Notes: generated by a model not told the origin, from the letters alone. Counted from the stretch's first letter, positions 6,801-33,260 are shown. The stretch: 64,000 nucleotides of DNA from Chara braunii (GCA_003427395.1 BFEA01000036.1:111871-175870), one strand, 5' to 3'. Program-made: numbers and translations.

Positions 6801-7401
6801 CTTGATCGGGTTTGTCCTTCGGGAGTAAGTCCTTGGGACTTTCGCGATCAAGGACAAGACAATAGTAGGCGGAGTCGGGGTTCAGGCAAGCCATGTGGAG
6901 GAATTGGTGCAGGGTGACGGAGCCTTGGGAGGTTGGATATGGAAGATAGGGGACGTCGATGGTTGTATCGGGGGGTTTGGTGAGGCGAAGGAAGTGGGGG
7001 TGGAATGTGTATGGCATGTAGCGGTCCAGCCACGGGGTTCCAAAGACGATGTCGCACATCAAGTGCATGACATCGAACGAGACCTGACTGCGGAGGGTTC
7101 CGACGGTCATGGTGGTATCGGGAACTGTGCGGTCTACGATGATGGCGGTGTCTTTGTCCCCTAGGCGAATCTTGATCGGGGAGTCGTAGCCGGTAGAGGT
7201 AAGACCGGCTTTGCGGACACACGCGTCGGTGATGAAGTTACCGGTGGCTCCAATGTCGAGGAGGGCCCGAAACTTAGTTGTAGACGCACCAAGTGTGGCG
7301 GCGATGAATTTGAGGTGGAAACGAGATGAGTTGGCGGTGGAGATGATGGTGTTGAGGCTGCGTTGTTCGTTGCCTAAGCGGACAAGCCGATCGTGTCGAG
7401 C
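3836..7401 (-). pseudogene. pol: Gypsy pol (PR-RT-RH-IN-chromodomain), frameshifted
   Basis: Overlapping ORFs 5662-7110, 4608-6086, 4390-4611 and 3836-4627 carry consecutive pol domains in different frames. Confidence 0.93.
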
Positions 7402-8135
7402 NNNNNNNNNNNNNNNNNNNNNNNNNNNNNNNNNNNNNNNNNNNNNNNNNNNNNNNNNNNNNNNNNNNNNNNNNNNNNNNNNNNNNNNNNNNNNNNNNNN
7501 NNNNNNNNNNNNNNNNNNNNNNNNNNNNNNNNNNNNNNNNNNNNNNNNNNNNNNNNNNNNNNNNNNNNNNNNNNNNNNNNNNNNNNNNNNNNNNNNNNNN
7601 NNNNNNNNNNNNNNNNNNNNNNNNNNNNNNNNNNNNNNNNNNNNNNNNNNNNNNNNNNNNNNNNNNNNNNNNNNNNNNNNNNNNNNNNNNNNNNNNNNNN
7701 NNNNNNNNNNNNNNNNNNNNNNNNNNNNNNNNNNNNNNNNNNNNNNNNNNNNNNNNNNNNNNNNNNNNNNNNNNNNNNNNNNNNNNNNNNNNNNNNNNNN
7801 NNNNNNNNNNNNNNNNNNNNNNNNNNNNNNNNNNNNNNNNNNNNNNNNNNNNNNNNNNNNNNNNNNNNNNNNNNNNNNNNNNNNNNNNNNNNNNNNNNNN
7901 NNNNNNNNNNNNNNNNNNNNNNNNNNNNNNNNNNNNNNNNNNNNNNNNNNNNNNNNNNNNNNNNNNNNNNNNNNNNNNNNNNNNNNNNNNNNNNNNNNNN
8001 NNNNNNNNNNNNNNNNNNNNNNNNNNNNNNNNNNNNNNNNNNNNNNNNNNNNNNNNNNNNNNNNNNNNNNNNNNNNNNNNNNNNNNNNNNNNNNNNNNNN
8101 NNNNNNNNNNNNNNNNNNNNNNNNNNNNNNNNNNN
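7402..8135. other. Assembly gap (N run)
   Basis: Run of N. Confidence 1.
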
Positions 8136-8571
8136 NTCGTCAGGAGTCGGGGGGGGGGAAGGGCGACGGGAGTCGGGGTCACGCGGAAGATAGCACGGGG
8201 GGGGTAGAGTCGGGATTGCAATCGGGGGCCGGGGGGGGAGTAAAAGAAGAAGAGGAGGAGAAGAAGAAGAAAAAGAAAAAGGATAGGGAGAAGAAGACGA
8301 AGAAGGAGAAAGAAAAAATAAAAAAAAAGAAAATTGTCATCGATTATTTATCTGCGCGGGTAGCAACGACGATGACGAGGATGGCACGGCGCGGCGACGA
8401 GGACGACATGCACGGCGATGGTGACGTGGCATGACGATCGCGACGGTGACAATGATGACGTGGCACGACGATGACGATGATGATGTAGCACGATGGTGAC
8501 GATCACAACGATGACGTTGATGATGGGCAGGTGGTGACGACGAAGCAGGGTGGGTCGGGCGGGTTCGAATC

Positions 8572-8583
8572 GCTCCGATACCA
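8572..8583 (-). promoter_or_regulatory. Primer-binding site, tRNA-iMet type
   Basis: Minus strand TGGTATCGGAGC starts 1 nt after the 5' LTR; one mismatch to the canonical TGGTATCAGAGC. Confidence 0.9.
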
Positions 8584-8584
8584 G

Positions 8585-9055
8585 TGTGACGGGGCTGAGG
8601 CAACGAGGCTGGGAGAGAGAGGGAGAGAGGGAGAGCACACACACACACTCACTCAACTCAACGCAGACTCGACACGACTCGACGGACGCAGACACGAAGT
8701 GGCAAAGTGGTAAAGTCGAAGTCTTGGATTCCCGAACACAATGTCGAAGCAAGTCACACCGAAGCACAAGCACTGAGGCCGCAAACTGAATGCCCGTACT
8801 GGGCTTGGGTCCGATCTTAAGTATTGGACTCAAGTTCAGTCCGATGGGCAGACGTGCAATTTGCCCAGGGCTGAACTGAAAATCGAAAGTTTGAAATTGG
8901 GCGCCAGAATGCCGGATGGCGTCGAGTGTCCCAATTCAGAAAAATAAAACAAAGAAAAAAATAAAAATAAGAAAAACAAAGAAAAGAAAATGTGTGCAGT
9001 TAACTGCGGTTAGCGTCCCGCGGACCAGTGATCGAGCCCTGTGTAGTCCGTAACA
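8585..9055 (-). repeat. 5' LTR (471 bp)
   Basis: Direct repeat of 2310-2781, adjacent to the PBS. Confidence 0.95.
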
Positions 9056-9864
9056 GTGTGTGTGTGTGTGTGTGTGTGTGTGTTCGGGTTTGCTGTTGTG
9101 GATTGTAGATCTAATGGTGGGCTTTGTGAGCAGGGCTGGCATCAAGGATCTTTCTGTTTTTCCTTTTTGTTCGTCGTTTTGGCTCAGTTTATTTCCCAAC
9201 TTTCTGCTGATCGGAGATCTCTCTAGATGAAAGCTCATGTGGCATTGTGCGGGGAGCTGTGCTGTATTTACGCCCTTTAGCACCATTTCCCTGTCTTCAG
9301 TTTTATTCTGTCTTTGCTCCTGTCCCCACCTAGCTTGGGTCTTCCTGTTCATGTCTTTATAGTAAGTTTATACCAACATGGATGTTGTTTCCACTTGTTC
9401 TTCTGTGAGTGTGGGCAGGTTTTTACCAGCTGTCTTTCTCCTGTTCTCCCCCAATGACCTGCAACTTGTCATTGATGCCCTTCCCCCTCCTCCTCCCTCG
9501 TCCTCCATCGCAGAATGGTGTTTGCAAAACTGTTTTTGTGTGGTTGTGTGCGGATGGAGGGTAGCGGACTTGATGCCCCACCAATCTGAGATGTTGAATC
9601 CTGGCTAAGTTGCCAAGTTTTGCTACTAAGAGTGCTGCAGAGTATTTAGTGCTAGTACCGGCGCTCGGGGCATGTAGACAGCGGCAATCCCTTATGTGCT
9701 CAGAGGTTGCTGAGGCACTGAGGTGAATTTGGTGTGTGAGAGAGCACAGCTTGTATGCCTTTTGCTGTCTGACCACTTTCTATGCCTTTCTCCATCTCTG
9801 ATGTTTTTGCGCAGGGGCCATGCTAATCTTTTTCTGCCTCTGATCTCTTTGCCTGTCTTTGCAG

Positions 9865-9924
9865 GCTGGGAACTGTGTCATTTGAGGTGGAGGCTATGTT
9901 AAAGGTGGCTCGCTTTCTTTGCGG
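9865..9924 (+). CDS. TRS120: TRAPP II subunit TRS120/TRAPPC9, internal exon (upstream exons not found in window)
   Basis: tttgcag acceptor and gtcagt donor. Encodes LGTVSFEVEAMLKVARFLCG, similar to plant TRS120 SFELEATLKLARFLCR; phase joins exon 13810. Confidence 0.85.
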
Positions 9925-10071
9925 GTCAGTTGAATTGTAGGCCTTTCCTCCCCTTTTTACCGTAGCTTAGTTCTGTGAACAAATTCTGTCCCTTAACTCA
10001 GTTCTACAAACTTCTGCCCGTCTCCGTTGGGGCGTACTCCGCTGATACTACGATTGTTGGTTGCATTGAAG

Positions 10072-10118
<47 letters not shown>

Positions 10119-10530
10119 GTTTGCACCGGTCAGTTGCCTCCACCACGGATGCATCACCTGTCGTAATTGTTTTTGTGAATGAAGCCGCAACAGGTCATCT
10201 AGTTTTTTTCTGTAAATAGCTCTAAGGAGGGATTTTGGAAGTTTTCAGGTTTCTCTGCTAGCACAACACTTGGAATGGGCTTCAACAGCATCATTTTTCG
10301 GGTGGTCCTTTATGTCAAATCTCACCCTTTTTCAGAAACCATGAAAACAGCATTGTGGAGGCCGGATTCTTTTGTTTTCGGGAGGAGGAAAAGAAGTCAT
10401 AATCAATCAAATCACTGTTTTCTCGCTACATTTCCACTTAGCCACCAGCCAGCTGCATTCTAATGTGAATACTTGGTGCCTCTCTGTGTTGTCATGTTCA
10501 CTTCAGTACATGACTCCACAAAAGAAACAT

Positions 10531-10597
10531 GAGACTGTTTTGTTGGACTTTCACCGACTTTCACCGACTCGTCAGGAGGTTGAGCCCCGACAGTCTC
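10531..10597 (-). ncRNA. Type III hammerhead ribozyme, degenerate copy
   Basis: GAGACUG UC GGGG CUCAA CCUC CUGACGA GUCGG UGAAAGU [10-nt duplication] CCAAC AAAA CAGUCUC. GAAA is mutated to AAAA. Confidence 0.8.
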
Positions 10598-10608
10598 CTC
10601 AGGATGCA

Positions 10609-10642
<34 letters not shown>

Positions 10643-10671
10643 GAAGGCACTTCACGAATACTTTCGCCATC

Positions 10672-10718
<47 letters not shown>

Positions 10719-10719
10719 N

Positions 10720-10769
<50 letters not shown>

Positions 10770-10860
10770 TCAGATCCCACGGCAAATCCATGCCATGTAC
10801 ACCACCACCACAGTGGTACACCAGACCCTGGTCATGTCCAAACTAATGCTCTCTGCTGCG

Positions 10861-10895
10861 CCAACTCATCAGGAGGCTGAACCCTCGACAATCTG
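10861..10895 (-). ncRNA. Type III hammerhead ribozyme, 3'-deleted copy
   Basis: CAGAUUG UC GAGG GUUCAG CCUC CUGAUGA GUUGG, then a jump to downstream family sequence (CGCAG). Confidence 0.75.
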
Positions 10896-11431
10896 CTGAA
10901 TCTCCGTATTTGATGGTTTGGGTCATGAACCCTTTGACCCTTGTTGAAGGCAGACTGTCCCCAAGCGGAACATTGCAGCGGGCAGCAACTCTATGGAGCA
11001 CCAGGCAGCACAGTAGAGGCAACACGGCTGCACAACGCCAAGAACGACTGCGAGGAACGACATGGCACGCAGGACATGCAGCACGGCAACCGTGTAGTGA
11101 AGCACAAGGCAACACAAGCAAGGTAGCCACACTACAAGGTACGACAGGGCGAGCGGACCAGCAGCTCGGCAAACGTGGAGCAAAGCACAAGGCACCAGCA
11201 ACAAGGCAACCATCCAACAAGGCCTGCAAGCAGCAAACATGGAAGGTACGGCCTGCGGATGGGCGGCGAAGACAACATGCAAGGCATGCAAAGAGTGCCA
11301 GGCACTCCAAACGAGGAATGACCAACTGTTTGGCACTGCTTAGAGGTGCTTGCTTCGACAGGGATAAAGTACCTCGAAAAAATTGAAGAATGAAAGACAG
11401 AACACGCAGAGAAAGACATACAAAACTGATC

Positions 11432-11496
<65 letters not shown>

Positions 11497-11545
11497 GTCA
11501 TATTTGCTATAAAGTAGTATAAACTCAAAAAAAGCATGACTGCGC

Positions 11546-11602
11546 CAGACTGTTTCATCGGACTTTCACCAACTCATCAGGAGGTTGAACCCCGACAGTC
11601 TG
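11546..11602 (-). ncRNA. Type III hammerhead ribozyme, intact catalytic core
   Basis: CAGACUG UC/GGGG UUCAA CCUC CUGAUGA GUUGG UGAAAGU CCGAU GAAA CAGUCUG. Perfect stem III, GUC cleavage triplet, CUGAUGA and GAAA cores, stems I and II. Confidence 0.9.
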
Positions 11603-11916
11603 CCCAGGATCCATTTGACTGGTGGATAAGGACTCACCACATCGCCCAGAGTCAGCGATAGCCCTGAGAAAAGTGGTTGACTTTACTCACACCAACCCCG
11701 CAATCCTAGTGTGTGTGGGGAGGGGCAAGGGGGGCGTGATATTAATGAGCTGCTGTGCTTCTAGTGTAGCATGTTGAGACCAGTGGAGCGGTGTTTCACA
11801 AGGACATGGAAAACATGCCCACAATCGATGCACTAAAGCGAGGCCCAAAATAAAGTCGGTAGTGAAACCACCCGGAAAACAGAATTTCAGTAAGAAGAAA
11901 AAGATGAGGATGGTGA

Positions 11917-11974
11917 CGAACTGTTTCCTCTGACTTTTACCGAGTCATCAGAAGGCATAACCATCGACAGTCTG
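11917..11974 (-). ncRNA. Type III hammerhead ribozyme, divergent copy
   Basis: CAGACUG UC GAUG GUUAUG CCUU CUGAUGA CUCGG UAAAAGU CAGAG GAAA CAGUUCG. The first stem II pair is swapped from G-C to C-G. Confidence 0.82.
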
Positions 11975-13809
11975 CAGAATCCCCTCGTAACGTGTTGAAC
12001 CGTATTCTGCTTCAACCTTTGATGCAAGAGAGCACGGAAGTGGGCGAACAACAAGGCGAAGAGGAAGGAGGGAACAGCGGGGCATGGCAAGCAGTGAAGA
12101 TACATGTTAAGCGGCAGCAAGGCAGGCGGTATGGCAGGCAGCAAGCCACGGCACAGGGCATGCGGGCACTTGAACAGTGAGGTAAACAGGAAGGGAACAA
12201 GACAATGAGCAGCAAGGCAGGCAGGCAAGAGGGCAAGCAGTGCAATGAGAAGCAAGGCGAGCAGGCAAGAGGGTGGGCAGCGCAATGAGCAGCAAGGCAG
12301 CAAGGCAGCAAGGCAGGCAGTAAGACACAGGGACTAGCAAACGAACAACAAGCAGGCGCAAGGCTCAATGGCAGGAGGGTAGGGGCAGTTTGGGCAGCCA
12401 AATGACAAGGAACGCAAAAGGAGAAGATGGATAACAGCTATAAGGTGAATACGTGCAAGGGAGGCCAACACAGTGAGCAGCAAGGCAAGCTGCAGCATGA
12501 CACAGAAAAACATGCGCGCACAGCAAGGATCAGTGCAGCTATCAGCTACCCACGTCATATGGAAAATGCTGCAGACTGGAGGTTCACGCCACCAGAAAAG
12601 AGCCAGGGAGTCAAAACATGACTGTTTTGTCACTAGACTCACTACCAGGGAAATCAGGGACACATGCATCCTGGACACAGAAGGCCCCCAGATAGTGTTG
12701 CAGGCACTTCGGCACACCTTCAAGGAACATGGGAAAAAACAAGAGTGCAAAGTTGCAAACAAACTGGACAACTAATTAGAAGAAGAATCAAGATGAAGAA
12801 AATAATGTAAACAAGTTAGAGTAATATGATGCTCTGTGTGTGTAATACCGTCAATACGTTATTGTCGTTACAGCAGGGCCAACGGTTGGGCTGAGCAGCA
12901 TCGGCTCTGGCTGCTTGGGTTCTCTGCATTGTGCTGGCATGCCCCTGGTCAAAAAATTTAGAGAAGCAGAAGGGGGCTATACAGGAATCTGGAAAGAGAA
13001 CTACATTGCGGAGAATTGCACTTCGGATTTACTCCAGTGAATCTTAGGACTGACTTCAGTAATTCTCAGCCGCACTTTCTGCTTCCAACTTCAGATTGTT
13101 AATCATCGCAGGTTCTTTTTTTTTTTTTTTTTTTTTTTTCATCGCAGGTTCTGATCATGATTCAAAATTCAAATCTCTCTCTCAACATGAACAGGTCCCA
13201 TGGGACCGTGGGGTTTTTCAGTAACCTTGTACGCACCTTACTGCAGGGGTTGATTGCGTGGGGGCATTTACATACTGCACCTTGGGTTTGGCTTTTACAA
13301 GTTTTATAACTTTTATTACATACTGTATCTTAGTTTCCACAGGACCACAAGCCTGCATTTTGTGCTGGCAATTTGGCGAACCTGTTTCCGCAACTGATTG
13401 GTCAAAACTTCTCAAAAGTCTTCGGCTCTTGTTTCGCGACTCTTTTCATGATGTTGTCATATTTTTGTGGTTGATTGGAAAGGTGCTCTGTCATTTCCAA
13501 GGATGGATAGTTTTTGAGTCTGCATCACCGTCAGGCCACTTTTGCTGGAGACTCCTGTGAGTCGTTTAAGCGGACAGCATGTTTCTTTGTCTTTGAAAAA
13601 GGTCTCTCCGATCATTATGCATTGTTCACGATATATGTGTCTGTACGTTTTAGCTAATCCATAGGAATGCGTTGATGGCAGTAGAGCAACATGCAATAGG
13701 TAAGTCAATCACGAACAGGGACAGGAAGGCGCTGGTGGTATCAGGTTCTGCGGCAGTTGTTTCAATAAACTGACAAAGTCTTGGAATTGGGGTGCGGTGT
13801 TGTTTGCAG

Positions 13810-16667
13810 GCGGGAAACACCCAAGGAAGTCACTGATTTGCTGATGCTGGCTGTGGGCATAGGGAGGGGTCTCACGGATCCCTGTGATAAGCTGGTACTC
13901 AATGTGGAAGTGGCACGTATCTTTGGATTACTGGGGTTTGAGCGCAAGGCTGCCTTCTTCTCGCGCCAGGTGGCCCAGCTTTATCAACAGCAAGACAGTA
14001 GATGGGCAGCCATGAGTGCACTTCAGGTGTTGATGATTGCTGCACCTCTTTATAGGGTTCCTATACAAAGTGCCCTGAAGCAGCAACAACATGGTTTGCT
14101 TGCGCTTACGGAGAGTGTGGTCGCTCTTTCACGAGACCAGGAGCAGAGGAGGAATGAGAGGAAAGAAGGCGGCATGCAGATCACCAAGAGAAGTAGCTCA
14201 GGGGTATCGCATGCCGTGCGAGGAGTGTTGCCGATGGAGGGGCAGTGGAACACCCTGCAGATGGAATTGCTGGGCGACATGCTGGCAGCTGCTATACGGG
14301 CACAGGACCCCATAGCTGCCTGGAGTGCGGCGGCAAGGTTGTTGAGAGGACACTACAGCTCCATCCTGCCAAATGGGCAGCTTGTCCTCTCTGCAAAGCT
14401 TGTGGCCGCAGCCGAGCGGATGCCGACAGGAAGCCGATGTCTTGATCCTGCCCTGCCGATTGTCAATCTGCACAGCTTTGTTGAGGCGGCCTCAGTGCTG
14501 CAGATTGTCAAGCGGTTCTCAGGACGGAAAGAATGGTGGGTTGACAGTGGCCAACCCACAACTCCTTTTATTTACTCTCCTTTTGCTTCTCAGGGAGGGG
14601 GTTCAGGAAGAGTAGGCAATAATAAGGTCCCACAGATTGTTTGGGTGAGTGGCGAAGTGAGCCAGGTGGTGGTTGAGCTTAGGAATCCCTGTTCATTTGA
14701 GGTTGTGGTCGATAGTCTGTTTCTCAGTGTTGAGGGTGGTTCTTACGATCCATTCCCAGTTGCGCTAAGCTTGCCAGCGAATACAGCTGGACATCTTGTC
14801 ACCTTATCGGGCGTACCCCGATCTGTGGGGCCAGTCAATGTGAGAGGATGTTTTGTGCGAAGCTTTGGCGTACTTACCGAACATTTGTTCAACAACGCTG
14901 TGGACGTATTGGGTCGTAGCAAGGTGGGAGGCTCTGCAATCGTACGGTCTGGGGGTCGCCAAAGACTGGGGTCACATGTTACTGTCGTACCACATTTGCC
15001 GCTACTTGTTGCGACTGTCGCCGGAGGAGAGGGAGCAGGAGTGCTGTATGAGGGCGAGATAAGGGATGTGCAGCTCAGTCTTACGAACGTCGGTGCAGCA
15101 GCAGTGGATGAGGTACACATGTCTCTCTCTGGAAGAAATCGGGAGCAGGTCCTTTCCATAGGGCAGGACGTTTTGCAGTCAAGCTTGCCCCTGTTGCCAG
15201 GAAGCTGTGTGTTGGTGCCTATACGCCTTCGCGCTGGCAAAGCAACCATGGAAGCAAAAGGAAGCGACGGACCAGCAACCCTCAGCCGGCCCAGCACTGC
15301 ACGAGCTGGCGTGAGCAATCAGAAAGCAGGGAGCACCGTTTTGACAATTCACTATGCTGGGAAGGGGCGGGCGGAAGGCTCTGCAGGGGTTGGAAACGTG
15401 AGCACAGAGGCTCTGCCACCAGGGCGTCGGCTGACAATCCCTTTACAACTGCATGTGCTGCAGGGGCTCACACTTGTCCGTGCCCGACTTCTTCCGATGG
15501 ATGTGCGCCCTAGGTCGGCAAACTTCATCGTGGCAATGCCTGGCCGGAGAGGAGCAGCAGCAACAGGACATGCAAGCAAGGGTGCCGGAGGCGAACTGGA
15601 GAGGTACCCTGGTCCTGGGCCTGGACTGAGGCTGATGGAGTTGGAATTGTTCAACACAACAGATGTACTTTTTGAAGTGAGTGTGATGATTCGGCAGCAG
15701 GAAGCACACACACGAGTGCTTCCCGATGGTGAATGCGAGGAAGACCCGGTGGGAACACCAAGAATGGTGTTGTATAGGTGTCATGTTTCAGAATCTCCAG
15801 TCACAGCGTACCCTGCAACCCGCATTGACAGGGATTGCTCAGCAAGGTTGTTGATACCGATTCAACGGTTTAGATTGCGGCCAAGTGCAGGAGGAAACAC
15901 ACCTAGAAATGCAAGGGATAATCTGACACCGAGCATCCAAGGGCAGCAAAGAGTAAGAGGATCAAGCAGCACAGGAATGGCAGACCCAGTGAGCTCAAGG
16001 TCGTTGGCCGAGCTGGATGCCACAGTTGATTCGCTGGCCTCGCAGATATGCGTCCGTTGGCAGTCTGGACGAAATAGTACTGGCGAGCTGTCTATAAGGG
16101 ACGCGATCCGTCAAGCGCTTGAACCCCCAGCGTTTGATCTGCTCTTTCCGGATCCGGTCACATTTACATTTGTTGTTGGGAGGTCAGTCACTCAGCTTCC
16201 TCAGCCAGTGTCTTCTCCATCTGCTCGAGTGTGTGATAACACGCCCTCAGGTCATGGTAACGGAAGGCCTAAGCTTCAGATCTCTGGATCGACTCTGCGG
16301 TTGGCATCACTACGATCTCCTGGCTCCTCCCCGATGGAATCGCCATCAGCAGTAAGCAAATTTGCATCGCCGGCTGCCAGCTCCCCGGTAACAGCGGTCG
16401 TAGCATATCGTGCCGCGGATGAGGGAGAAGCATCACCTCGGTCTGCAAATGCACAGGGAGGAGATCTTGTCGACCAGAAACTGCCTGGAGAGAGTTCCGA
16501 GTTCCTTTGCATGAAAGCCACGGTTCGGGAGCTGACGCCAATCGTGCTGATAGTGCGAAATAATAGTCCACAGCTGCAGAAAATGGCAGTAACGATCTCT
16601 TGTCAGGATGTTGCAGGCTCCAATTGTCTGGGTTCGGAGGCGTCAAAGGCAACAGTCCTATGGGCAG
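13810..16667 (+). CDS. TRS120: TRS120/TRAPPC9, large internal exon (2858 bp)
   Basis: Open frame with TRS120 motifs GFERKAAFFSRQVAQLY, PFIYSPF, ELRNPCSFEV, LYEGEIRD, RWQSGRNSTGEL, CQDVAGSNC and VLWAG. tttgcag acceptor, gtgagt donor. Confidence 0.95.
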
Positions 16668-17232
16668 GTGAGTGTGCTTTCCTGTGCTAAGTTCGTCCTT
16701 TTTTCTTCGTCTTCTTTATTATTGCAATGCTGCATAACATATCTTTTTTCAGATTTTTTTCAATGTTTTTAAGTCAGATTTTTTTTCCTTCGGGGCGGGG
16801 GGGGGGGGGGGGAGAGTGCTAAGTCACTTCTACTTTGCAGATCAGACGGCGATGTCTTCCATATGTGTTTGTTTTACAGCTTCTCTTTCATTTCACATGC
16901 AGCCTTTAGATATTCTGGATCTGCTGGACTGTCCATTCCATTGCAGATGCATCGACTCTGTGTAATACAGTTCGATTGGCGCGATACACACTGGTCTACA
17001 ACTCTACAGAGTCTACACTCCTCTGGGTTCTGACCTGCTTAAATGTTAGTGTCATCTGGTCATCTGTGCTTATATCACCTTGTGGGGGTTGACAGGGCTC
17101 TGGTCCTCTTATGTGGGTGCCATTGCCATGGGCACAACATCAGACTGGTGTATAACTTTGTATTACAACAGTAGTCTTCACCCGACTAGAACGCCCGGTC
17201 ATTATAGCTGTTTTTGGGGGCAACTTCCATCT

Positions 17233-17270
17233 CTGTCTCTTATACACATCTAGATGTGTATAAGAGACAG
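17233..17270. other. Nextera mate-pair junction adapter (two inverted Tn5 mosaic ends); sequencing artefact
   Basis: CTGTCTCTTATACACATCT followed by AGATGTGTATAAGAGACAG, an exact match. Confidence 0.98.
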
Positions 17271-17287
17271 CTTCTACTCAATCAGCC

Positions 17288-17392
17288 CCGTCTTCACCCG
17301 AATAGAACGCCCGTCATTATAGCTGTATTTGGGGCCAACTTCCAGCTCAGAAACAGCGATAATTACCAGGCATTCTATTCGGGTGAAGGCGG
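17288..17392. repeat. ~105-bp foldback element (family also in RPL18 introns)
   Basis: Arms CCGTCTTCACCCGAATAGAA / TTCTATTCGGGTGAAGGCGG with internal GTCATTATAGCTGTAT. Confidence 0.75.
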
Positions 17393-17837
17393 TAGCGGTT
17401 CTGACCCTCTTGAATGCTTGTGCCGTCTGTGCTTGTATCGCCCTGTGGGGGTTGACAGGGCTTTGGGCCTCTTATGTGGGTGTCATTGCCATCGCCCAGG
17501 GTTGTTCTCCTTTTTATTAGTGTTAGCCCCCCCTTATTATTGTATCCATCATCAGGATTTGAAGCCTTCACTGTTCATTAACAGCTACGTGTGTGACACT
17601 GTGTGTATCATTCCGCTCTGTTTATCCGTCTTCTTGTTCTCTTTCCCTTCAAAGACTAGTTCACCCGAACCTAAGCCGGCCTCCTACTGGTCTACACAGC
17701 AAGGCCATGACGCTTTGTGAAAGCGGAAGGCCACTAGTGAAAGTGGAAGGCCACTAGGGAAAGGAACAGTTGGAGGCTCACGAGCCTTGGAGGGTCGCTT
17801 CGTCATCTTAGGCTCATGTGAGCTGGTGTGTTTAACA

Positions 17838-17882
<45 letters not shown>

Positions 17883-18116
17883 CACCTTTGCGCTTTCGCC
17901 CCCCTTTGACAGTGGTACATATCTTGTTGCATCGATCGAGATGACATTTAGACCAGTGTGAAGTTGCAGCTCCACATTTGCCTCTCGCACCCTAGCGGCC
18001 CCCACCCGCACGCCCCCTGCCAACCCGCTTTTCACTCACTCCCTGCCTTCTTGATTGCTTTTGGGTTGTCAGTGGCTGGATTACAAATGACTGTCGTCAT
18101 CGGTGATCGTTTACAG

Positions 18117-18382
18117 GTACCTTGACAGGTGCAGAGCTGGTCGTGGGTCCATGGAGCGAATGCATGCACAAATTTGCTCTCTACTTCCTGGTGCCGGGAA
18201 GCTACACGTTGATTGGGTCATGCTTCATGTTGAGTGACACATGGCAGAAAGCCATAGCTGACCAGAGTGATGGCGGTGCTAGGTTCAGGACTGGCATCCC
18301 AGAGGTCAGCAGTCCGCCGCTTTCGATCATCAAGGGGCTGCAGCACATTGTTGGAGAACCGTTCAAGATACGGGTTGTGTGA
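18117..18382 (+). CDS. TRS120: TRS120/TRAPPC9, terminal coding exon
   Basis: tttacag acceptor; in-phase GTLTGAELVVGP..HKFALYFLVPGSYTL...GEPFKIRVV stop, matching the plant TRS120 C-terminus. Confidence 0.9.
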
Positions 18383-19860
18383 CCCTTGATCTCTGAAGTG
18401 GGTGGCGAACAGTTTCGCAGCTGTCAAATTGGGAGTCAGCAGTCGGTTCTTAACTTCATGAGGTGGGTTCTTAACTTCTTACAGCTTTTGTTTCCCATCT
18501 TGAGAGTGCGAACGACTGTTTTGAAACCGAGCGAGCTGTAGAGAAAGGCCTCAAAGTGGAGATCTGCCAAACGTCGACTTGTGCACCCGGTTTCCCTCAT
18601 TTCCCCACCCACCTGTGGGAGCGGTAGGCCTCATGGGTTGGTTTAAACAAGGGGGGTGGGGTGGGGTGGGGTGGGGTGGGAACGAGTCCAGGCAGGTGCT
18701 CGTAGAACATCTTGAGCAGGGTGCTGTGATGCTTCTGATGGGTGAAATCCTTTTCCTCTGAGGCAGTGACAGGAGGACAGGTCCGTGCTGCCGAGGGCTT
18801 TGTCTTAGGGTTTGATGCTCTGCTCTTTGCTGTCGAAGTAGGAACAGGGGTCGGACGTGGTTATGGCAGGTGGTGGTACCGTTTGGTGCGCACGAGTTCT
18901 TTTTTCTTTTTTTTCACATAAAGGGTCAGCCCATAACATTATTGTTTTAATTCGATTCCGTTCAGATTCGCAGATTCGAACTCGTAATCTGTTTTACGGA
19001 CAGATACATGTGTATACCATTCAGCCACCTGGGTTCTCGACAGGAAGGTACGCGGAATTCTGCAGACTGCCGAAGATTACAATGGATATGTCTTGACTCT
19101 TGATGTTTCCACACAGTTGCTCAGTTGTGGAAACTCAGACAGAGTCGGAGTGAGTGTGCACCCGCCTTTTCTGTCAGAGTACTTCATTAGATGCGCTTGT
19201 TACAGTAGTCTCAGGAAGAGGGGCATGCAGATGTGCTTTGCTGTTAAAGATTTTATCACCCCTCTTATGGGGCTGCAAACACATGGGTTGCGCCTGTCCA
19301 TTCCGTCAGTACTTTGGTAGTAGCACTCGTTAAGCCACCGAGCAAGGTCCACCGGTTGGTGTGCCAGCCTTTCGTGGACGTATGCGCCTGCCTGCACACT
19401 GTTAACTTCAAATGGTTTCAAGAGGCGCGCAGAGGGCGAAAAAGGAAGGGTCCCTAGAGTCGTAAGACAGGCGGTTTGAGAAGAGGAGGGGCGTGCATGC
19501 ATCATTGGCTGTGGCTGTTGAAGATTTTCTCCCCTTGTCTGGGGTTGTCGCAGTTTTCACATGGGCTGCAGCTAGCAAAGACTCTGATTCGAAGAGTTCT
19601 TAATCGCAGAAAGAAGAGGCTGGATTGGCCATTAGCAGCAGGTCTTCTCGCATGTCATTGCTGCTTGGTTCTGCTTCACTGGTTCAGGGTCAAGGTTGCC
19701 TTTTATTATTTGTATTTCTCTTTTTGTTGAGGTTTGTCTTTTCATTGTTTTCAATATGCACCACTTTGGCTGTTCTGCATTCAAGGCACTGCCAACGATT
19801 GTTGTCTGAGCTGTTGGGTGTTTCCCCCTCCCACCCCGCCCTTCTCTTGAGCAATGTTGC

Positions 19861-19891
<31 letters not shown>

Positions 19892-20623
19892 GGGGGGGGG
19901 GGGAGAACCCCTGTTGCAATCCACAAAGCAGCACTGTCGCTTGCACGAAAAAGTTCAAAGTTGGGTGTGTGAATTGCGGCAGCAATTAACCGCATTTTCC
20001 GTTTTTGCCACTCTGCCGGTTCTCCGCACTACGCTACTGGTAGCCCACAGGAACCTGTGCTACCAATCCTCCTGATGTCTTTTATTTTTTATTTTTATTT
20101 TTATTTTTATTTTTTATTTTTATTTTTTATATATTTATTTATTAAATTAATAAATTATTTATTTATTTTTATTTATTTATTTTCGGTGGTGGTGCTCACA
20201 GGACCCATCCCTTTTTTTTCTTTTTTTCTTTTTAATTTAATTTAATTTTATTTTATTTTTTTGGGTGATGGTGCTCACACGGCATCCCATTCCTACCTCA
20301 ACATTCTTCTTCCTTAGCGGAACCCCTACTTCTCCATCTATGGGGGGCACTGTTGACCCTTACCTCGTGGGTGGAGGAGTTTTTAAAGTTATTCCGTCCG
20401 GGTGTAATGCCATGTCGCGACTTATCCTGACCAGATTTCTGCCATTTTGGATATCAGCCGTCAGATAAGCGACTCATTTTTCAGACCCTGTCTGTGGTGC
20501 CCCACAAAGTGCGAATGGAAACACGGGCAGAGTCTCGGAAATCACTAAGTGTCTGCACTTGGATTGGCTCTATTCAACCGACCGAGAAAAGGAAACTTGA
20601 GAAAACAGAAAAGGTCCTAGAGC

Positions 20624-20986
20624 GCCCAAGCAGGCTAGGTTTGAGCATGGAAGTAGGGAGGTCGTGGGTTCGATTCCCCACATCGTCCATTCTAATCCTC
20701 ACAGCCTCCTGTGATGCGCTTCGGGATCTCCAGTGAAGATAATTGGCTTGGGCCTCCTGGCTGGCTGAAAAGCGACCATTTGCGCCTTCCAGCTCGCACC
20801 TGGTGTTAGAAGCTTGGGTGCTGCTCCCCGCACAGAGCAGATGTGGCTTCTTCATAACTTAGGAGAGATTTCCTGCCTTGGGCACGAAAAACCCTGTAGC
20901 GGATTGCTAAGCTGCGTGTAGGTAGGTAGTTAGTGGGAGATGTATCGAGAGACGAATATAAGTTAGTTTTTTGTTTAAAAAAAAAA
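20624..20986 (+). mobile_element. tRNA-derived SINE
   Basis: 15-bp TSD AAAAGGTCCTAGAGC (20609-20623 and 20987-21001), B box GGTTCGATTCC at 20667-20677, poly(A) tail. Confidence 0.85.
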
Positions 20987-21930
20987 AAAAGGTCCTAGAG
21001 CAGATCTCACAATGAAACAGAAAAAACCTACAGCAGATCTTCTGCATCACACAGAAAGGAAAATGCCGGCGCAGCCCAAACTCTGCTTTACCTTTTGGGG
21101 TAGGACCGTTTGCATTTTCCTCTTTGGGCTGCCGGCCCTGCTCCACTAAACATTCGACATACACACCTGGCCTATGTCTGGACCACATCCTTGCGCTGAT
21201 CGAGCCTTTTGAATGTATTGGGACCACTACCAGACCCAGATACATTCAGATGTTGCACAGTGGAGCGAGGCCCAGTACTGAGAGAGAGTGCATGGTGGGC
21301 CTTGCTTCACAATTCGACACTCGATATGTACCTGGACATTTCCATATACATCCGGACTGTTTGAGCCTTTTGAATGTATATGGACAAGTACAAGAATCAT
21401 GTACGTTCAGAATGGTGTGCAGTGGACCCAGGCTTCAGTGACAAGAGAGAGTGCACTTCGCCCATTTTTGTTGAGGCGAGACTCTGCTCGGCACAGCCCA
21501 GAAAGGAACATGGCAAGAAAATGAAATAGGCGGGTTTGCGCGGCGGCAGATGTTCCTCGTGGGCAGCGCAGAGTAGGGTATCGGCTTTGCACTCTGTCTC
21601 GCTAGCACGTGTGTGGCGAAGTGCATTCTCTCTCTCACACACATGCATGGCGAAGCGTGCTCTCTCTCTCACTCACATTTGGTGAAGCGCACTCTTTGTG
21701 CTTCGAGGGGCATAGTCCCATTCACATTTGGTGGAAAAATGAAATACGCGAGTTTGTGCGAGGTAGCGACTGCACTGGAACCAGCCTGGTGACAGGAAGT
21801 GCAGTGTGTGTGTGTGTGTGTGTGTGTTCCAGCCTTGTCATCACCGTGCGTGTTCCCCTACACATAAGGCTTATGGTTGGTTGGCGCAAGGTAGCGACTG
21901 CACTTGAACCAGCTCAATGACAGGAAGTGC

Positions 21931-22005
<75 letters not shown>

Positions 22006-23288
22006 GAGAGGGAGGGAGAGATGGCTCCAGCCTTGTCATCAGCGCTCCAGCCTTGTCATCACCGTGCGTGTTCCCCTACACATAAGGCTTATGGTTGACC
22101 GTCCAATCTTTGTCCTTTTCATCAGCTGATGTGGAGGGGAGAGAACTTGAAAGTCAAAGACAGGGCATGAGGGCACAAGACGAATAGGGTACGGCAGGCA
22201 AATTAAGGTTGTCGGCGTCAAGGGGTTTGTGGAGGGGGTAAACCGTGGAGGAGTATCCTAAGGTAAATGGGAGGATGATGGACCAAATTTTTGAAGAGGG
22301 AATGGGCAGCCTGGATTCTGAGGGAACCAATCAGGCTATGGGATCGATTGGAGGAGGATGGAATGTCAACTAATCAGGGTGAGGATGTAGGAACCAATGA
22401 AGTGCGGGAGAAGGCACGGCAAGGCACGACAAGGCCGCGAGTTGCTAAAAGACAAAACTGCAGGTTGCAGGGGGGGGAGGGGGGGGAGCGGACAAGGTGG
22501 GGAAGGAGAGATTGGAAAGAATTTGGAAGGGATGAAAAGGGCAGAGGCGGGGGAGAAGGATAATAACAAAGGCCCTGAATCACGACAGGGGTAGGGGCCG
22601 CAGGGCAGATGTGGATGTGCCGGTGATGGAGGACAGAAATGAAGAGAGGAACGGTGACTGACAAAGGAAGAGAGAGGACATACTATATCCACATGGGCCA
22701 CATCGGTTATTGGAGTAGGAGATCGGAAAGGATCCCAATGGAGGAGAGAGAGCAGTGTAAAAAGACGGGAAGAGGGAGGCGACAAACACAGGATGAGGAG
22801 GGAAGAAGTTGATGAATTATTTACTTCAGGGTGATGGTGGTGAGAGAAACAAAAGCACAAAACAACCGATGAAACTGCTAATCGCACGTTGTCGAAGACT
22901 CAATCGAACACGTCACCATTTGATCCCCATGCAAAGGTGATGAGCAAATGATGTTGATGTGAATTACACCGACACATTAAATAAAGAGGAGAGATGCAAC
23001 CGGTCTGTTAACATTGCTGCTAGTAATATGGATATTCCAATTGTTAAAAAACAAAAAAGGCATGCATGCAATGGAGTGATGGGAGGACCAACTAGACTCC
23101 AGATGTGAAAAGACGACGACATACCAGTTTATATAAATAAAGAGTAAATGCGCTGAAAAATGAGCGATGAACGATGCAATCATGTCATACTACCAATCAG
23201 TATTTCGTAGTCACATTTATTTCTTTGTTTTAAACATTCCGATTCCTTCAGGGTGGAACTTCGAATGAGGACAGGCTTGCCTCCTTAA

Positions 23289-24074
23289 ACCACCACTACC
23301 CCCGCCGTCCTAAATTATGGGGGACCGGTTGCACAGGTCCATGAGGGCTACCGGTAGCACAGTGGGGGGATCTGGCGGAGTGGCAAAATTGGAATATGCA
23401 TCGAATTGCCCCCATGATTTATTCCGGGGTTGAAATGAATTTTTAATTTGTTAAAAATGTTTCTCCTAAAAAGACAACGACGAAATTTGCGGACCCTCCA
23501 AGTTTCAGAAAATTTTGAGTATTGTATTGGACGTGAAAAATTGTTGGAGTCGGAGTACTTTTCCTGTTGGCGGACACGTGATAGAGCGGCAAAAATGGAA
23601 TGTGGGACGAATTGCTGTGACATTTGTTTTACGGTCTGAATTTTTTTTTCAATTTTTAAAATATTTTTCATGGAAAGTTCACGACCAAATCTACAGGCCT
23701 GTCAATTTGCAGAGTTGTTGAGTCATCCTTCTGAGCGCAAAAAATTGAGGAAGTTGGGGTACTTTTCCCTTTGGCCCACACATTGTAGGGTGGCAAAACT
23801 GAAAAATGTGATGAAATGGCGCGGCATTTATTTGACGGTCTAAATATTTTTATTTTATTTTATTGATATTTTTCCTAGAAAGATCACAATCTAATCTACA
23901 GGAACTCAATTTTTCAGATTTTGTTTTGATTATTATGAGCACGAAAAATCGCCGAAGTTGGCGCTTGAAAATTCATAGACTGAACCCGCGTGCACCTGCC
24001 AATCACCGCCCCCCTAAGAACCTAGTCCGTAAGGCCAGGAAATGTGATTTTAGGACGGAGGGGGTAGTGGTGGC
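23289..24074. mobile_element. Non-autonomous DNA transposon with 26-bp TIRs and TTAA TSD
   Basis: TTAA|ACCACCACTACCCCCGCCGTCCTAAA ... TTTAGGACGGAGGGGGTAGTGGTGGC|TTAA, with an AT-rich non-coding interior. Confidence 0.85.
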
Positions 24075-24242
24075 TTAATGGGAAGACAATGCGCCAACCC
24101 CACTAGGATATTCTTGTTATGTCCCTCTTGCTAGCTATCTTCTCCTGCATCACTCTTGCCAATCTCTTGTTGTTTTTCCCCATGATCCCTCTTTCTCTAG
24201 AGGGTGCGTTCAATCATTCATCTTCAAATGCCCTCTCTCATG

Positions 24243-24328
<86 letters not shown>

Positions 24329-24586
24329 CTCTTTTTGGCAATATATCTTTTTTTTTGTGGGTGTTTTGCTGGTTTGTGATGGGGTGTGAAACGACAGTCT
24401 GTGGAGTTTTTCATCTGGTGTTGGTGAATGATAGTCTGCTTTGATTTTCGTCATGGGTTCGGGTACCTTAAGGGCAGTGGTTGGTACCCACCTCAAGGTA
24501 TCAGTTGTCGCGCAGTCGTTGATGCTTAACCACAACCGGGGTTAAGGTGAATTATCGCTTATAGTGTAATCAGTTAGGGGATTCTG

Positions 24587-24644
24587 CAGATTGTTGAGGG
24601 TTCAGCCTCCTGATGAGTCGGTGAAACTCCAACGAAACAGTTTG
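24587..24644 (+). ncRNA. Type III hammerhead ribozyme
   Basis: CAGAUUG UU/GAGG GUUCAG CCUC CUGAUGA GUCGG UGAAACU CCAAC GAAA CAGUUUG. Core intact, GUU triplet. Confidence 0.88.
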
Positions 24645-24834
24645 TCACATCCCCTTGTTTGTTGTCTTCTTCTCCCTCTCTGCCTACGGTTTATCAGGCA
24701 GCTCTGTTTGACAATATACACCATGATTTTGCAAGCACCTTGCTACGGTTTTCTCTGGTCAGGTCGAGCGGTAGTGGTCGGGGCCGTCACTATATGGCCA
24801 TGTTGTGCCTCTAGTGCCAGCAGCGTGTCCAGAG

Positions 24835-25122
24835 CTAGGCTACCAGCCGGGCCGCCCGGGTCACCCTATTTTCCCGGACGGCCCAGCCGTGCAAGGACCA
24901 TGGAAGGCCCTAGCAAAAAAAAACAAAAAACAAAAAAATCAGAAAAATCCGAAAAAAAACTATGTTATGCAGAAAAGTAACCTGAACAACTTTTGCCTCA
25001 GGGTCACATCGAAATTCTTTACCAATTTTAAAATAAAAAATAAAGTGAAAAAAATATTTTTATTTTTTTATTTTTTTATTATTTTTTGGCCCGGTCGGCC
25101 CCGGGCCACTCTGGTAGCCTAG
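24835..25122. mobile_element. MITE, TIR CTAGGCTACCAG, 8-bp TSD (hAT-like)
   Basis: TSD GTCCAGAG/GTCCAGGG; four copies in the window. Confidence 0.88.
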
Positions 25123-25392
25123 GTCCAGGGTGTATTTTTTGGTTGTGACAAACCTTTCTTTGTTTCGTGGGTGTTTTGTTGGCTTGTGATGGGGTGTGAA
25201 CCGGCAGTCTGTACAATTTTCCATCTGGTGTGGGTGAGTGATAAGTCTGCTTCGATTTTCATGACGGATGCCTTTGAGGGCAGTGGTTGGTGCCCACCTC
25301 AGGGTATCAGTTGTCGGTCAGTCGTTAATGCTTAAACACAGTCGGGGTTAAGGTGGATGATCACTTACAGTGTAATCGGTTAGGGGATTTTG

Positions 25393-25450
25393 TAGACTAA
25401 TGAGGGTTCAACCTTATGATGAGTCGGTGGAACTTCGACGAAACAGTTTG
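25393..25450 (+). ncRNA. Type III hammerhead ribozyme, degenerate copy
   Basis: UAGACUA AU GAGG GUUCAA CCUU AUGAUGA GUCGG UGGAACU UCGAC GAAA CAGUUUG. Core C3 and the cleavage triplet are mutated. Confidence 0.78.
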
Positions 25451-26089
25451 TCACAATCACTCGTTTGTTATCCTCTTCTTCTTCTCTCATAAACTTTACT
25501 CAATGATATATTTAATAACTTTCACTCACACTTTGAAAGTTATTAAATATATCATTGAAAAGTGTTTGCATGTCACGTAAGTTTTTTTTTCGAATAGCGT
25601 GCATCTAACAATTGCGAGTATTATTCCACAATTTTTTTTACTCTTATGTGAGGATAGGCTACAAGTTGGGTGACAATTTTCACCAGTACATATGGTAGTC
25701 CATGTCATCTTTTATATTCACTTAACTTGAGAAGGTAATTTTCAACAACTTTTTTATTTTTTGTGAGGGAGCAACTTTATATGGTTAAATTTTTCACTCG
25801 CGGTACGTTGTCATTCATGCCTTAAAGCACCAGTACACCATACATCGACCCGCTGATGTAAGCATGAAACACCCGCACCACTTCAGAGGCCGATGATTTT
25901 CTTTTCAACAGCATCTCAAACCGCGTGGCCCCTTCGAGTTTTGTTTGTGGCGACAAAAACTTAGTGTGAGGTTGGGGTCGTGTACTGATGGTTTAAACCT
26001 ATATCAGTTAGTGACTCAGACTTTGTGCTGATGTCACTAACAGCTTTGCATAAAAGTAGGTGTATGTCATATATTGACTATGCTTGTTG

Positions 26090-28190
26090 TTTTTTCACTT
26101 TATTATTAACTCGTATATATTCATGTGTGATTTATTTTTTATTTTTTATTTTTTTAAATGGCTCCTTCTATTATGGGGAGCATCAGTTTGGTTCCTATTC
26201 CACCGGCAAGTCGGAAAACACATTATATTACATCAGAAACTCACGCTTCCTCCCGTTTGGCTGAAGGAGCCCTGAACAACATTCATTACTCTACTATTGG
26301 TAGAGGATTGACTGTCAGCTTGCCATGACTCACTCTTTCCTCTCAGACCTGAAAAACCAGCTTTGCCAGATAGTACTATATTACCAACTTGAAGAAAGAG
26401 TTCGCCCATTATTGTTTCTTCTTGCCTGTGCTTCCCCACTCATCAGCCCTACCCGTAAGTCACGATATCCCCTATCCCCTTGAGCCTTTCCCCCTTCTTT
26501 TGAATTCTACTAAAAACCCTAAATCCTAAGCCCTACCCCTCGCTTAGGAGGTATTATTTCCTCTTTGGGTGTACCATGTTTCGCTTAGCTTAGATGTCTT
26601 TCCAATACTGTTGTCATCTGATTCCTCCCATTGGATTCTGATTTATGCCAGTCTTTTCCGCCACCTTGCCTTCCAGCAACCATAGCATGTTGAATCTCTT
26701 TCTGTTCTAATCTTGTAGGTCCTCGTCCTCTGGTAACGATCGCTTCTGGCTCAACCACCTGCTTCGGATTTCTGCCTGCAATAAAGTTTTTGTTTCTGTC
26801 CACACCTTTCATCGCGGATTGGAGAGGCCTTCAATGGTTTTGCCGCATCTTTCCTTCCAAATGACCTACAGTGTCACCTTCTTAATTAATCCAAACCACA
26901 ACTGTTCTGTTTTCTTGAGATGGTCAAGGAGGTTAGTCCAAAGAAGAAGTTGGATAGGATGTTCGGGGAAGGGTGTTCTGAAGAGAGAGTCTCATAGAGC
27001 TGATGCCCGTGCCCAGTATTCCGTAGCTTCATTGCAGTAGAGTAGGCAATGTTATATGTCTTCCTGACTTCCTTCTATGCAAACAATGCATAAGTCCGAG
27101 CTACTTGGATCGTTCTTATAACATCTTGTATTTATCCATTTATGAACCGAGAGTGAAGCATATGTAATAAGCCACTGAAGGCTTCTGATTTTGATTGACT
27201 TTATCGTTTTGTATTTTTTTCAGGGGATCTGGGACAGGTTGTCAACTTCCTGTCCTAATAATTTTTGCCATCTGTTTCTGATTACCGGAGCGGTATCTTT
27301 TGTTTTAGTCAAAAAGTTTATACCCGAACTTAACTGAGTATTAATATATCGGGACCCTAGACTTGATATTGTTGTTTTTGTCTGGTATCCAATCCCATTC
27401 GGCTGGGTCGAATTCCAGGTTCCTCACTGTCGTATCTGGTCTAAAGATCTGTTTTGACCACTGACCTAGCACTCTTATTTTCCTAAGTAGATAGACCTTC
27501 ATAATTACCATTTCCACATCCTTATTTATTATCAATGGCATGCCTTGGAGCGACGATGAGATCGGAAAGGCCGAAAAGACAGCCTGTGTGGTTGATCTCG
27601 GGTGCATATGAGAGAATTGCAAAGCTCTTGAGGGGGGGCGTTCTTGCACTTTAAGTCCCCACTCCCCAGACTTCCACGATATGACCTCTTTTAGGATATT
27701 TTTCAAATTTGAATGGATTCTATCAATAATATAGTGAAAGTTGGATCCTTTTTTATGACAACCTTTCAGGAGCCCGTTCAGTTATTGTTCATTTATCCAC
27801 TTTTTTTTTTCTACCTTCTATAGATGACCGACTGTCCATACCCCGTTTTTGACCCAAGAGAGTCATCTTTGTTCTAAGACAAAGGGATTATTTCCCTCGT
27901 CAATCACCCAGCTGTTACCAAAAAGTGGTTGTCTTAGGACTTCATCTACGGACCTTGGCCTGTTCACCCTTTTTGGGAGAATTTCTCTTCATATCCGGAT
28001 CAGGGTCAACCAATAAGGGATGGTGCATCTGTCCGCGTCTTGTGTTGGTACACCTCTCTACCTTCTCCTTCCTTTTTTGAGCTTTCATTCCCTAGTCATT
28101 ATCCAGAACAGCCCAACCATGTTTTCGAGAGAGGTTACAGGTGCCAGAGCCTTGATGCTGTCGAGTGCCATTTTGTTCCATGGATGCAGT
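26090..28190 (-). mobile_element. 5'-truncated, degraded L1-type LINE (ORF2 C-terminus plus 3' UTR)
   Basis: Minus strand near 27030-27095 reads LCIVCIEGSQEDI*HCLLYC (zf-RVT CxxC..HxxxxC). Trp-rich broken frames; A-rich tail near 26090-26160. Boundaries approximate. Confidence 0.75.
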
Positions 28191-28501: not shown

Positions 28502-28781
28502 TTAGGCTACCAGCCGGGCCGCCCAGGTCCCGGGTGGCCAGCCCGTGCAAAAACCAGGGAAGGTCCCAACAAAAAATGAAAAAAAAAACAAATAAAAATT
28601 TTAAAAATCTTGAAAAAAAAACTATGTTATGCAAAAAAATAAACTAAACAACTATTGTTTCAGGGTTACATCCAAATGCTTCACCAAATCTAAAATAAAA
28701 ATATAACTTTGAAAATATTCTTTGTTTTTATTATTTTTGGCCCGGTCGGGCAAGTGACCCCGGACCATTCTGGTAGCCTAG
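28502..28781. mobile_element. MITE, same family as 24835-25122
   Basis: Same TIRs; perfect 8-bp TSD TTTTTAAG. Confidence 0.88.
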
Positions 28782-30050: not shown

Positions 30051-30211
30051 GCAGGGCAGCAGCGGGGCGCAGACGAGGCCGCGCACACACTCAACCCGGA
30101 GCAAAACACCACATGGCCAACTCACATCACGAATGAGCCTCGGAAACTGTCAACTCCCACCACCCACTGAGCAAGACTGAATGGCTGCTCTATTCGTACG
30201 TAACCGGATAC

Positions 30212-30252
<41 letters not shown>

Positions 30253-33069: not shown

Positions 33070-33260
33070 GCGGCGGGCGGAGGCGGGCACAGGACAACGG
33101 GGGAGGCGGCGGGCGGAGGAGGTGGCGGGAGGAGGCAGGCGGAGGCGGGCAGAGGTGGGCGGAGGCAGGCGGAGGCGGGCGGAAGCGGGCGGAGGCGAGC
33201 GGAGACGGGAGGAGGAGGAGGCGGGCAGAAGAAGAAGAAGAAGAAGAAGAAGAAGAAGAA

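Follow-up and report, generated by a model that had tools for sequence, protein, structure and literature searches.

What kind of element carries type III hammerhead ribozymes through the genome of a streptophyte alga? The question is raised by a 64,000-nt stretch of Chara braunii DNA (GCA_003427395.1, BFEA01000036.1:111871-175870), referred to here as the window, where a sequence-only reading had picked out six such motifs and taken them for an abundant, non-autonomous, ribozyme-bearing retroelement family. That description is borne out by sequencing depth, by the dispersed copies and by the lack of an accompanying open reading frame (ORF). Our findings support a model, in our judgement the probable one, where several related short and non-coding families, devoid of long terminal repeats (LTRs), insert into microsatellites, with the type III hammerhead setting the 5' end of the template and a reverse transcriptase (RT) supplied in trans. 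The Chara family seems to be related to plant retrozymes as a non-LTR cousin instead of being a classical one.

All six motifs were recovered where they had been placed, on the minus strand at 10531-10597, 10861-10895, 11546-11602 and 11917-11974 and on the plus strand at 24587-24644 and 25393-25450, and all are homologous (alignment A1). A covariance model built from four of the window copies (R1) finds six out of six, with 37-89 bits. The Rfam model RF00008 (Hammerhead_3), scanned permissively over 9500-26500, matches four of them with E values between 8e-7 and 0.33 (table 1), the homology of 25393-25450(+) and 10861-10895(-) coming from alignment A1, not from Rfam. No window copy gets to the RF00008 gathering score of 48.5 bits, the best standing at 43.7; the sequences scored were the decayed copies of the window, not the family consensus. 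At gathering thresholds, a tRNA is the sole Rfam match in the window and no hammerhead is returned. The pattern CTGATGA..GAAAC occurs five times in the window against 0.33 expected, and the type III layout, in which loops close helices I and II while helix III is open, is present, RF00008 aligning end to end over model positions 1-54.

The state of the catalytic core varies among copies. CUGANGA, GAAA and a UH cleavage site are all found in 11546-11602(-), in 24587-24644(+) and in the family majority sequence, and the core is broken in four copies. The sole window copy with everything intact is 11546-11602(-), which combines a full CUGAUGA and GAAA core with a GUC site (predicted cut after C11594), helix III formed by CAGACUGU/ACAGUCUG, a 4-bp helix I and a helix II (GUUGG/CCGAU) with a G10.1-U11.1 wobble; R1 gives it 80.1 bits. 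In 24587-24644(+) the core is intact and helix II has one C x A mismatch, private to this copy, since more than 80% of family reads carry G, not A, at 24631 and so restore the pair. The majority sequence deduced from reads is a canonical type III hammerhead, with no majority change listed in the core. As for the others, 10531-10597(-) owes its inactivation to G12->A and to a loop 2 lengthened by a 10-nt duplication; 25393-25450(+) is broken by C3->A and by helix III mismatches 16.1/16.2 at the cleavage site; 11917-11974(-) has a weak helix I and a 10.1-11.1 pair flipped to C10.1-G11.1; and 10861-10895(-) retains the 5' half only, everything past CUGAUGAGUUGG being deleted. Judged by sequence, the six copies are old and mostly inactive insertions, of which one or two at most could still cleave.

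Over the 17 pairs tested, 90.6% of cells are paired, compared with 30-44% when partners are slid. The sequence-only reading had also cited covariation at two stem pairs: both changes are real, but across eight copies the support is suggestive, with three pairs changed on both sides and 56 of 500 shuffles reaching the same.

What, then, surrounds the ribozyme? The stretch over which every copy is homologous consists of the hammerhead with ~10-45 nt before it and 25-35 nt after it, and the ribozyme is thus the conserved module of several sub-families. These share a 3' module in which ~10-45 nt of upstream sequence and the type III hammerhead are followed by a 50-95 nt tail ending in TGAC(A/G)A, and then by a microsatellite. 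The 3' end is fixed, embedded in (TA)n in the B1 family and in (CA)n in the A family. In the window, the B1 end lies at 24709-24718 (TGACAATATA); this terminus is established by the (TA)n-flanked copies of two sampled loci, where it falls at L005:15121-15134 and L006:3485-3494. The tail of A-type copy 2 ends in ATGACAA and is joined directly to (CA)31 at 11434-11495, a microsatellite found by TRF, and that of copy 1 ends in ATGACAA-CACA; the two copies align over 143 nt at 73% (10612-10476 being the copy 1 stretch), and ATGACAACACA occurs twice in the window (10485-10495 and 11491-11501), at (CA)n, against 0.05 expected. The 5' ends, on the other hand, vary among copies, as seen in sampled loci L005 and L006 and in the window copy starting at 10612. 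Micro-copies consisting of the terminal 9-14 nt only lie inside (TA)n at L005:16314-16323 and L006:3739-3748, and B1 copies are present in three of the 13 sampled stretches. The combination of TGAC(A/G)A, microsatellite and variable 5' truncation is the signature of target-primed reverse transcription into microsatellites. The B2-type copy aligns locally (12019-11892) with 25350-25483; near it lies a further B1-unit-like piece (12540-12590), with a 40-nt minisatellite (12203-12321) between them.

The absence of a coding frame beside the motifs, claimed from sequence alone, holds: none of the copies has beside it an ORF that matches Pfam. Between the minus-strand copies lie two ORFs of ~160 aa, which are without a Pfam match and fall within GC-rich minisatellite sequence. 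ARAGORN found no tRNA-like or short interspersed nuclear element (SINE)-type head, and collections of metagenome and viral contigs, scanned for exact matches to the helix II plus core signature, returned nothing. Further type III relics occur at L012:18467-18513(+) and L005:22927-22950(+), one internally deleted and the other comprising core and helix II in a different context.

On the plus strand, two direct repeats (24347-24681 and 25154-25487) are 83% identical. Unit 1 has a GUU site, with a predicted cut after T24595, and a 74-nt tail ending in TTTGACAATATA; unit 2 stands head-to-tail behind it and is interrupted by a miniature inverted-repeat transposable element (MITE), with family homology and read depth ending at ~25487. 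The joint 24829->25130, which skips the 300 nt and marks MITE-free copies, is found in 65 RNA reads and 8 DNA contigs; once the MITE is removed, 506 nt separate one cleavage site from the next. We read 24330-25487 as a head-to-tail partial dimer, because the family 3' end falls inside what would be the internal region of an LTR model. Neither the ~506-nt unit RNA (z -2.1 linear, -1.5 circular; GC 48%) nor the 123-nt product (z +0.5) is markedly structured. The MITE has CTAGGCTACCAG-type terminal inverted repeats, with further copies at 58335-58627, 59864-60162 and 28528-28738 and in L005 near 16300, and its read depth suggests very many copies in the genome. Right after the unit 2 breakpoint, 25492-25565 is an AT-rich, nearly perfect hairpin of ~74 nt with weak miRNA-precursor matches only, and possibly represents a small foldback insertion to which the unit 2 tail was lost.

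Reads from four runs (raw oligo-dT RNA; RNA-like contigs under the same species label; RNA-like contigs under a second species label; DNA contigs) were aligned at 80% likeness to 24330-25700, that is, to the plus-strand dimer only. Summed DNA word depth, a rough guide to abundance, shows a sharp peak of 1.0-1.8 million from ~24596 to ~24718, compared with 35-95 thousand over the part of the unit that precedes it and 14-23 over unique flank. The predicted cut falls immediately before G24596, so that the cleavage nucleotide is where a large class of genomic copies starts; one 132-nt DNA contig covers exactly 24596-24718. Loose ends behind 24710, 24712 and 24718 run on into (TA)n, in DNA and RNA alike. 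Joints that go back from 24718 to 24596, 24597 or 24601, with TA-rich letters between, occur in DNA contigs, in RNA contigs, in 18 raw RNA reads and under the second species label; given that they are also present in DNA, they are uninformative on circles. The pattern suggests that copies starting at the cleavage site, for which this is the best explanation, were reverse transcribed from RNA that had already cleaved itself, an activity predicted from the motif. It also suggests that linear, 5'-cleaved RNA, not circles, gave rise to the dominant genomic copies. First mates of RNA pairs show an orientation bias of ~3:1 at the peak. In 151 DNA contigs the match to the hammerhead holds as far as ~24639, beyond which a different, T-rich tail takes over; the ribozyme module is therefore also found in further families, which have other 3' ends.

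Table 1. Hammerhead-bearing copies, Rfam matches and associated features in the window and in two sampled loci.
Feature	Position	Strand	Description
A-type copy 1	10489..10612	-	5'-truncated ~15 nt upstream of hammerhead; (CA)15 adjoins
RF00008 match	10532-10596	-	34.7 bits
B-like relic	10861..10914	-	87-91% identity to 24569-24621
A-type copy 2	11495..11617	-	~15 nt upstream homology, hammerhead and ~50-nt tail; 5' extent past 11617 uncertain
RF00008 match	11547-11601	-	43.7 bits, E 8e-7
B2-type copy	11857..12019	-	~45 nt upstream, hammerhead 11917-11974 and tail
RF00008 match	11918-11973	-	23.9 bits, E 0.33
B1 unit 1	24330..24718	+	5'-truncated beside (CT)n tract 24247-24328; hammerhead 24587-24644
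RF00008 match	24588-24643	+	34.3 bits
Dominant genomic segment	24596..24718	+	~123 nt; predicted 3' cleavage product (from G1.1) plus tail
B1 unit 2	24719..25487	+	head-to-tail behind unit 1; MITE-interrupted; stops 37 nt past its hammerhead (25393-25450)
MITE	24830..25129		300 bp; later insertion into unit 2, not part of the hammerhead element
B1 copy	L005:15121-15249	-	5'-truncated; (TA)n on both flanks; ends TTTGTGACGATATATA
B1 copy	L006:3396-3494		starts inside helix II; ends TTTGACGATATATA

In the proposed mechanism, transcripts of the element, or read-through transcripts, would self-cleave at GUH. The ~123-nt 3' product, made of the ribozyme body and the tail, would be the commonest template for target-primed reverse transcription, with priming at nicked microsatellites through its own microsatellite-like 3' end. 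The outcome would be tens of thousands of dead-on-arrival copies without the 5' strand of helix III, while rarer long copies and partial dimers such as 24330-25487 would keep complete ribozymes and are likely the source copies. A dimer transcript would release a ~506-nt unit RNA with 5'-OH and 2',3'-cyclic phosphate ends, which could, by analogy with retrozymes, be circularised as a possible step. The RT would act in trans, a Chlamys-type Penelope-like element (PLE) being its likeliest source, because such elements share microsatellite targeting, 5' truncation and partial tandems with the family.

An alternative that starts from the same PLEs, and that we regard as unlikely, is that the motif is simply the 3' untranslated region (UTR) or pseudo-LTR (pLTR) of an autonomous PLE reported in Chara, PLE-X for example, the short copies being ordinary 5'-truncated tails. 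Canonical hammerhead ribozymes (HHRs) have indeed been described in two C. braunii PLE types, together with microsatellite targeting: Chlamys-2_cBra combines a 'canonical 3'-HHR' with a gag-like ORF, a PLE-X-like, endonuclease-less type also carries HHRs, and Chlamys elements target (CA)n and (C)n, Naiads (TA)n, both forming partial tandems (Craig et al. 2021, PMC8557442). In the literature searched, this is the only paper joining Chara and hammerheads, and in the loci sampled here the ribozymes concerned differ in type. The window contains a Chlamys-2-type PLE with two ORFs (34832-45280(-), a partial tandem with a 7550-nt unit), and for comparison we took 12 more PLE loci from Chara, Chlamys-2-type loci among them, which total 282.5 kb and whose proteins have 31-73% identity to the window RT. 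Seven of these loci (L006-L012) have a readable PLE hammerhead, which is minimal type I in all and type III in none. It follows the layout CCCUC-CUGANGA-helix II-GAAAC-CGG or GCG-UC-GGGG, with a 1-bp helix III and a palindromic loop CGCG or CCGG. In L007, L010 and L012 it is found in both pLTRs, 5.4-5.9 kb apart, the same architecture as reported for PLEs by Cervera and de la Peña (2014, PMC4209133). The window PLE, scanned over 30000-48000, shows no type III hammerhead by Rfam or R1; near 34920-34965(-) it has a decayed minimal type I motif ending in GAAACGCGUCGGGG. The tail of the Chara family is not shared by these elements, and the few type III copies inside PLE loci are unrelated insertions in microsatellites. 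Thus, the possibility allowed for in the sequence-only reading, that the motif might prove to be the UTR of a described autonomous element, does not hold for Chlamys-2-type PLEs, with their type I hammerheads and no sequence in common. For PLE-X, the Selaginella PLE HHRs, from relatives of PLE-X, were described as resembling the type I hammerheads of Schistosoma and human (PMC4209133), which by inference makes a type III ribozyme less likely there. Furthermore, the ~506-nt unit is itself repeated without any ORF. The family and Chlamys-2_cBra PLEs (PMC8557442) are alike in occupying the same genome, in having a hammerhead near the 3' end, microsatellite targets, 5' truncation and partial tandems, yet the latter differ by their minimal type I hammerhead, by encoding gag-like, GIY-YIG and RT proteins, and by sharing no sequence with the family.

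Spread at the DNA level, by unequal exchange or segmental duplication of a satellite-like repeat in which the hammerhead is a fossil without a role, appears improbable to us. Such a history would agree with the head-to-tail arrays, with the dead state of most window ribozymes and with an RNA depth roughly proportional to DNA depth. The copies, however, are dispersed and have differing flanks, a fixed 3' end, varied 5' truncation and micro-copies in microsatellites, core and helix II are intact in the majority sequence, and a class of 5' ends at the exact cleavage nucleotide is not expected from spread of this sort.

Less credible still is a plant-type LTR retrozyme, with the ~335-bp repeats as LTRs, Ty3/gypsy mobilisation and a circular RNA. 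The plus-strand locus does resemble one, as a type III hammerhead sits in each of two ~335-bp direct repeats around a non-coding centre, and a Ty3/gypsy element is found within the same window. Nevertheless, the angiosperm-type LTR reading advanced from sequence alone had to be abandoned. Neither around 24682 nor around the minus-strand copies is there a primer-binding site (PBS) for tRNA-Met with two mismatches or fewer, and the window's single PBS-like site (TGGTATCGGAGC, at 8572-8583) is that of the Ty3/gypsy element; the sequence before 25154 is pyrimidine-rich and contains no polypurine tract (PPT); and the flanks, TTTT and TAAA, give no 4-bp target-site duplication (TSD). In addition, the family 3' end, at 24712-24718, falls within what would be the internal region of such an element, and in other copies it is directly followed by (TA)n; most copies are 120-nt fragments, not solo LTRs. 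Like plant LTR retrozymes (Cervera, Urbina and de la Peña 2016, PMC4918200), the Chara family belongs to the green lineage, is non-coding and non-autonomous, and has a type III hammerhead placed in direct repeats, so that a dimer transcript could release unit-length RNA. Unlike them, it lacks LTR termini, tRNA-Met PBS, PPT and 4-bp TSD, its 3' end lies in (TA)n or (CA)n, 5' truncation is massive, the unit (~506 nt, 48% GC) is not strongly self-paired, and ~10^4-10^5 fragments contrast with the tens to hundreds of retrozymes per plant genome. Finally, chance matches to the hammerhead consensus, for which one could invoke the Rfam gathering score that no copy reaches, are rejected as having next to no probability in view of six homologous copies, E values down to 8e-7, five patterns against 0.33 expected and pairing of 90.6% against 30-44%.

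Several observations weigh against the model of self-cleaved templates reverse transcribed into microsatellites. An alternative hairpin is favoured over the catalytic fold by 2-6 kcal/mol in each of the two best copies (for 11546-11602, -15.2 kcal/mol as a hammerhead versus -21.6 for the rod-like minimum free energy structure). No autonomous partner was found, as the 12 PLE loci and the window PLE share neither hammerhead, tail nor unit sequence with the family by R1 and BLAST. Branch points in the assembly graph may account for part of the contig ends at 24596, and summed contig word depths are a rough hint of tens of thousands of copies, not copy numbers. The oligo-dT run, a library poorly suited to reveal them, shows no pile-up of RNA ends at the cleavage site, and much of the RNA may be passive read-through, its depth being for the most part in line with DNA copy number. 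Unit 2 of the dimer, moreover, is without the expected complete 3' end.

Self-cleavage is known to define an end of the retrotransposition template in elements with HDV-like ribozymes, such as R2, RTE and L1Tc, and the Sm-alpha repeat of Schistosoma has a hammerhead within a SINE-like sequence. R2 retains a complete ribozyme at its 5' end; the Chara ribozyme differs from these in class or topology, cleavage removing the 5' strand of helix III, and a cleaved template therefore yields dead copies. The metazoan non-LTR retrozymes (de la Peña et al. 2020, PMC7229834; Li et al. 2026) resemble the Chara family in their short non-coding head-to-tail units, in the lack of LTR, PBS and PPT, in a very high copy number and in their co-occurrence with PLEs, the suspected mobilisers. 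They have, however, type I hammerheads, have been reported in animals only, are mostly arranged in long tandem arrays and have documented circular RNAs, whereas the Chara family is type III and mostly consists of dispersed single fragments in microsatellites, with a hypothetical circular stage. Animal non-LTR retrozymes have been argued to derive from PLE pLTRs (Li et al. 2026, bioRxiv 10.64898/2026.07.22.740005).

Other elements share the window and the sampled loci. A Ty3/gypsy chromovirus at 2309-9055(-), with RT, RNase H, integrase and chromodomain ORFs, is bounded by 473-bp LTRs (2309-2781 and 8584-9055, 93% identical) and flanked by (CA/TG)n tracts (2144-2313 and 9056-9100). The minus-strand hammerhead cluster lies, in antisense, ~2-3 kb upstream of a long exon-like ORF with a TRAPPC9/Trs120 domain (13781-16690(+), E 1.3e-18). 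The window PLE copy is followed by a long CTT-rich low-complexity tract, and just downstream of the element, at 33247-34313, dense direct and inverted repeats of 140-600 nt form long hairpins with many weak miRNA-precursor matches. Sequences resembling the U6 small nuclear RNA recur in the window (9771-9866(-)) and at L005:23338-23440, L005:1760-1850 and L007:925-1037; one is above the Rfam threshold (75.7 bits) and has an A-run after it instead of the usual T-run, the others are fragments, and they may represent U6 retro-copies or chimeras. The tRNA gene at 63645-63724(-), at 55.4 bits, has extra nucleotides past the anticodon arm and probably contains an intron.

To our knowledge, the type III hammerheads described so far in plant genomes are associated with LTR retrozymes that Ty3/gypsy elements mobilise, and non-LTR retrozymes, with type I hammerheads, are known from animals only. 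It is possible, and we put it forward tentatively, that the Chara elements are the first non-LTR, microsatellite-targeting, type III retrozyme-like elements, present at ~10^4-10^5 copies in Chara braunii and occurring under at least one other species label, with cleavage in vivo setting the 5' end of the RT template and Chlamys-type PLEs mobilising them in trans. The family accounts for a sizeable fraction of the microsatellite-associated repeats of the Chara genome. If the proposal is true, the genome itself would bear witness to cleavage in vivo, through its copies that start at the cleavage nucleotide, and the role of the hammerhead in retrotransposition, 5'-end processing versus the making of circles, would become directly testable. 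The hammerhead would then be a module that moves between retroelement classes, and the Chara family would provide a link between the type III LTR retrozymes of flowering plants and the PLE-dependent type I retrozymes of animals.

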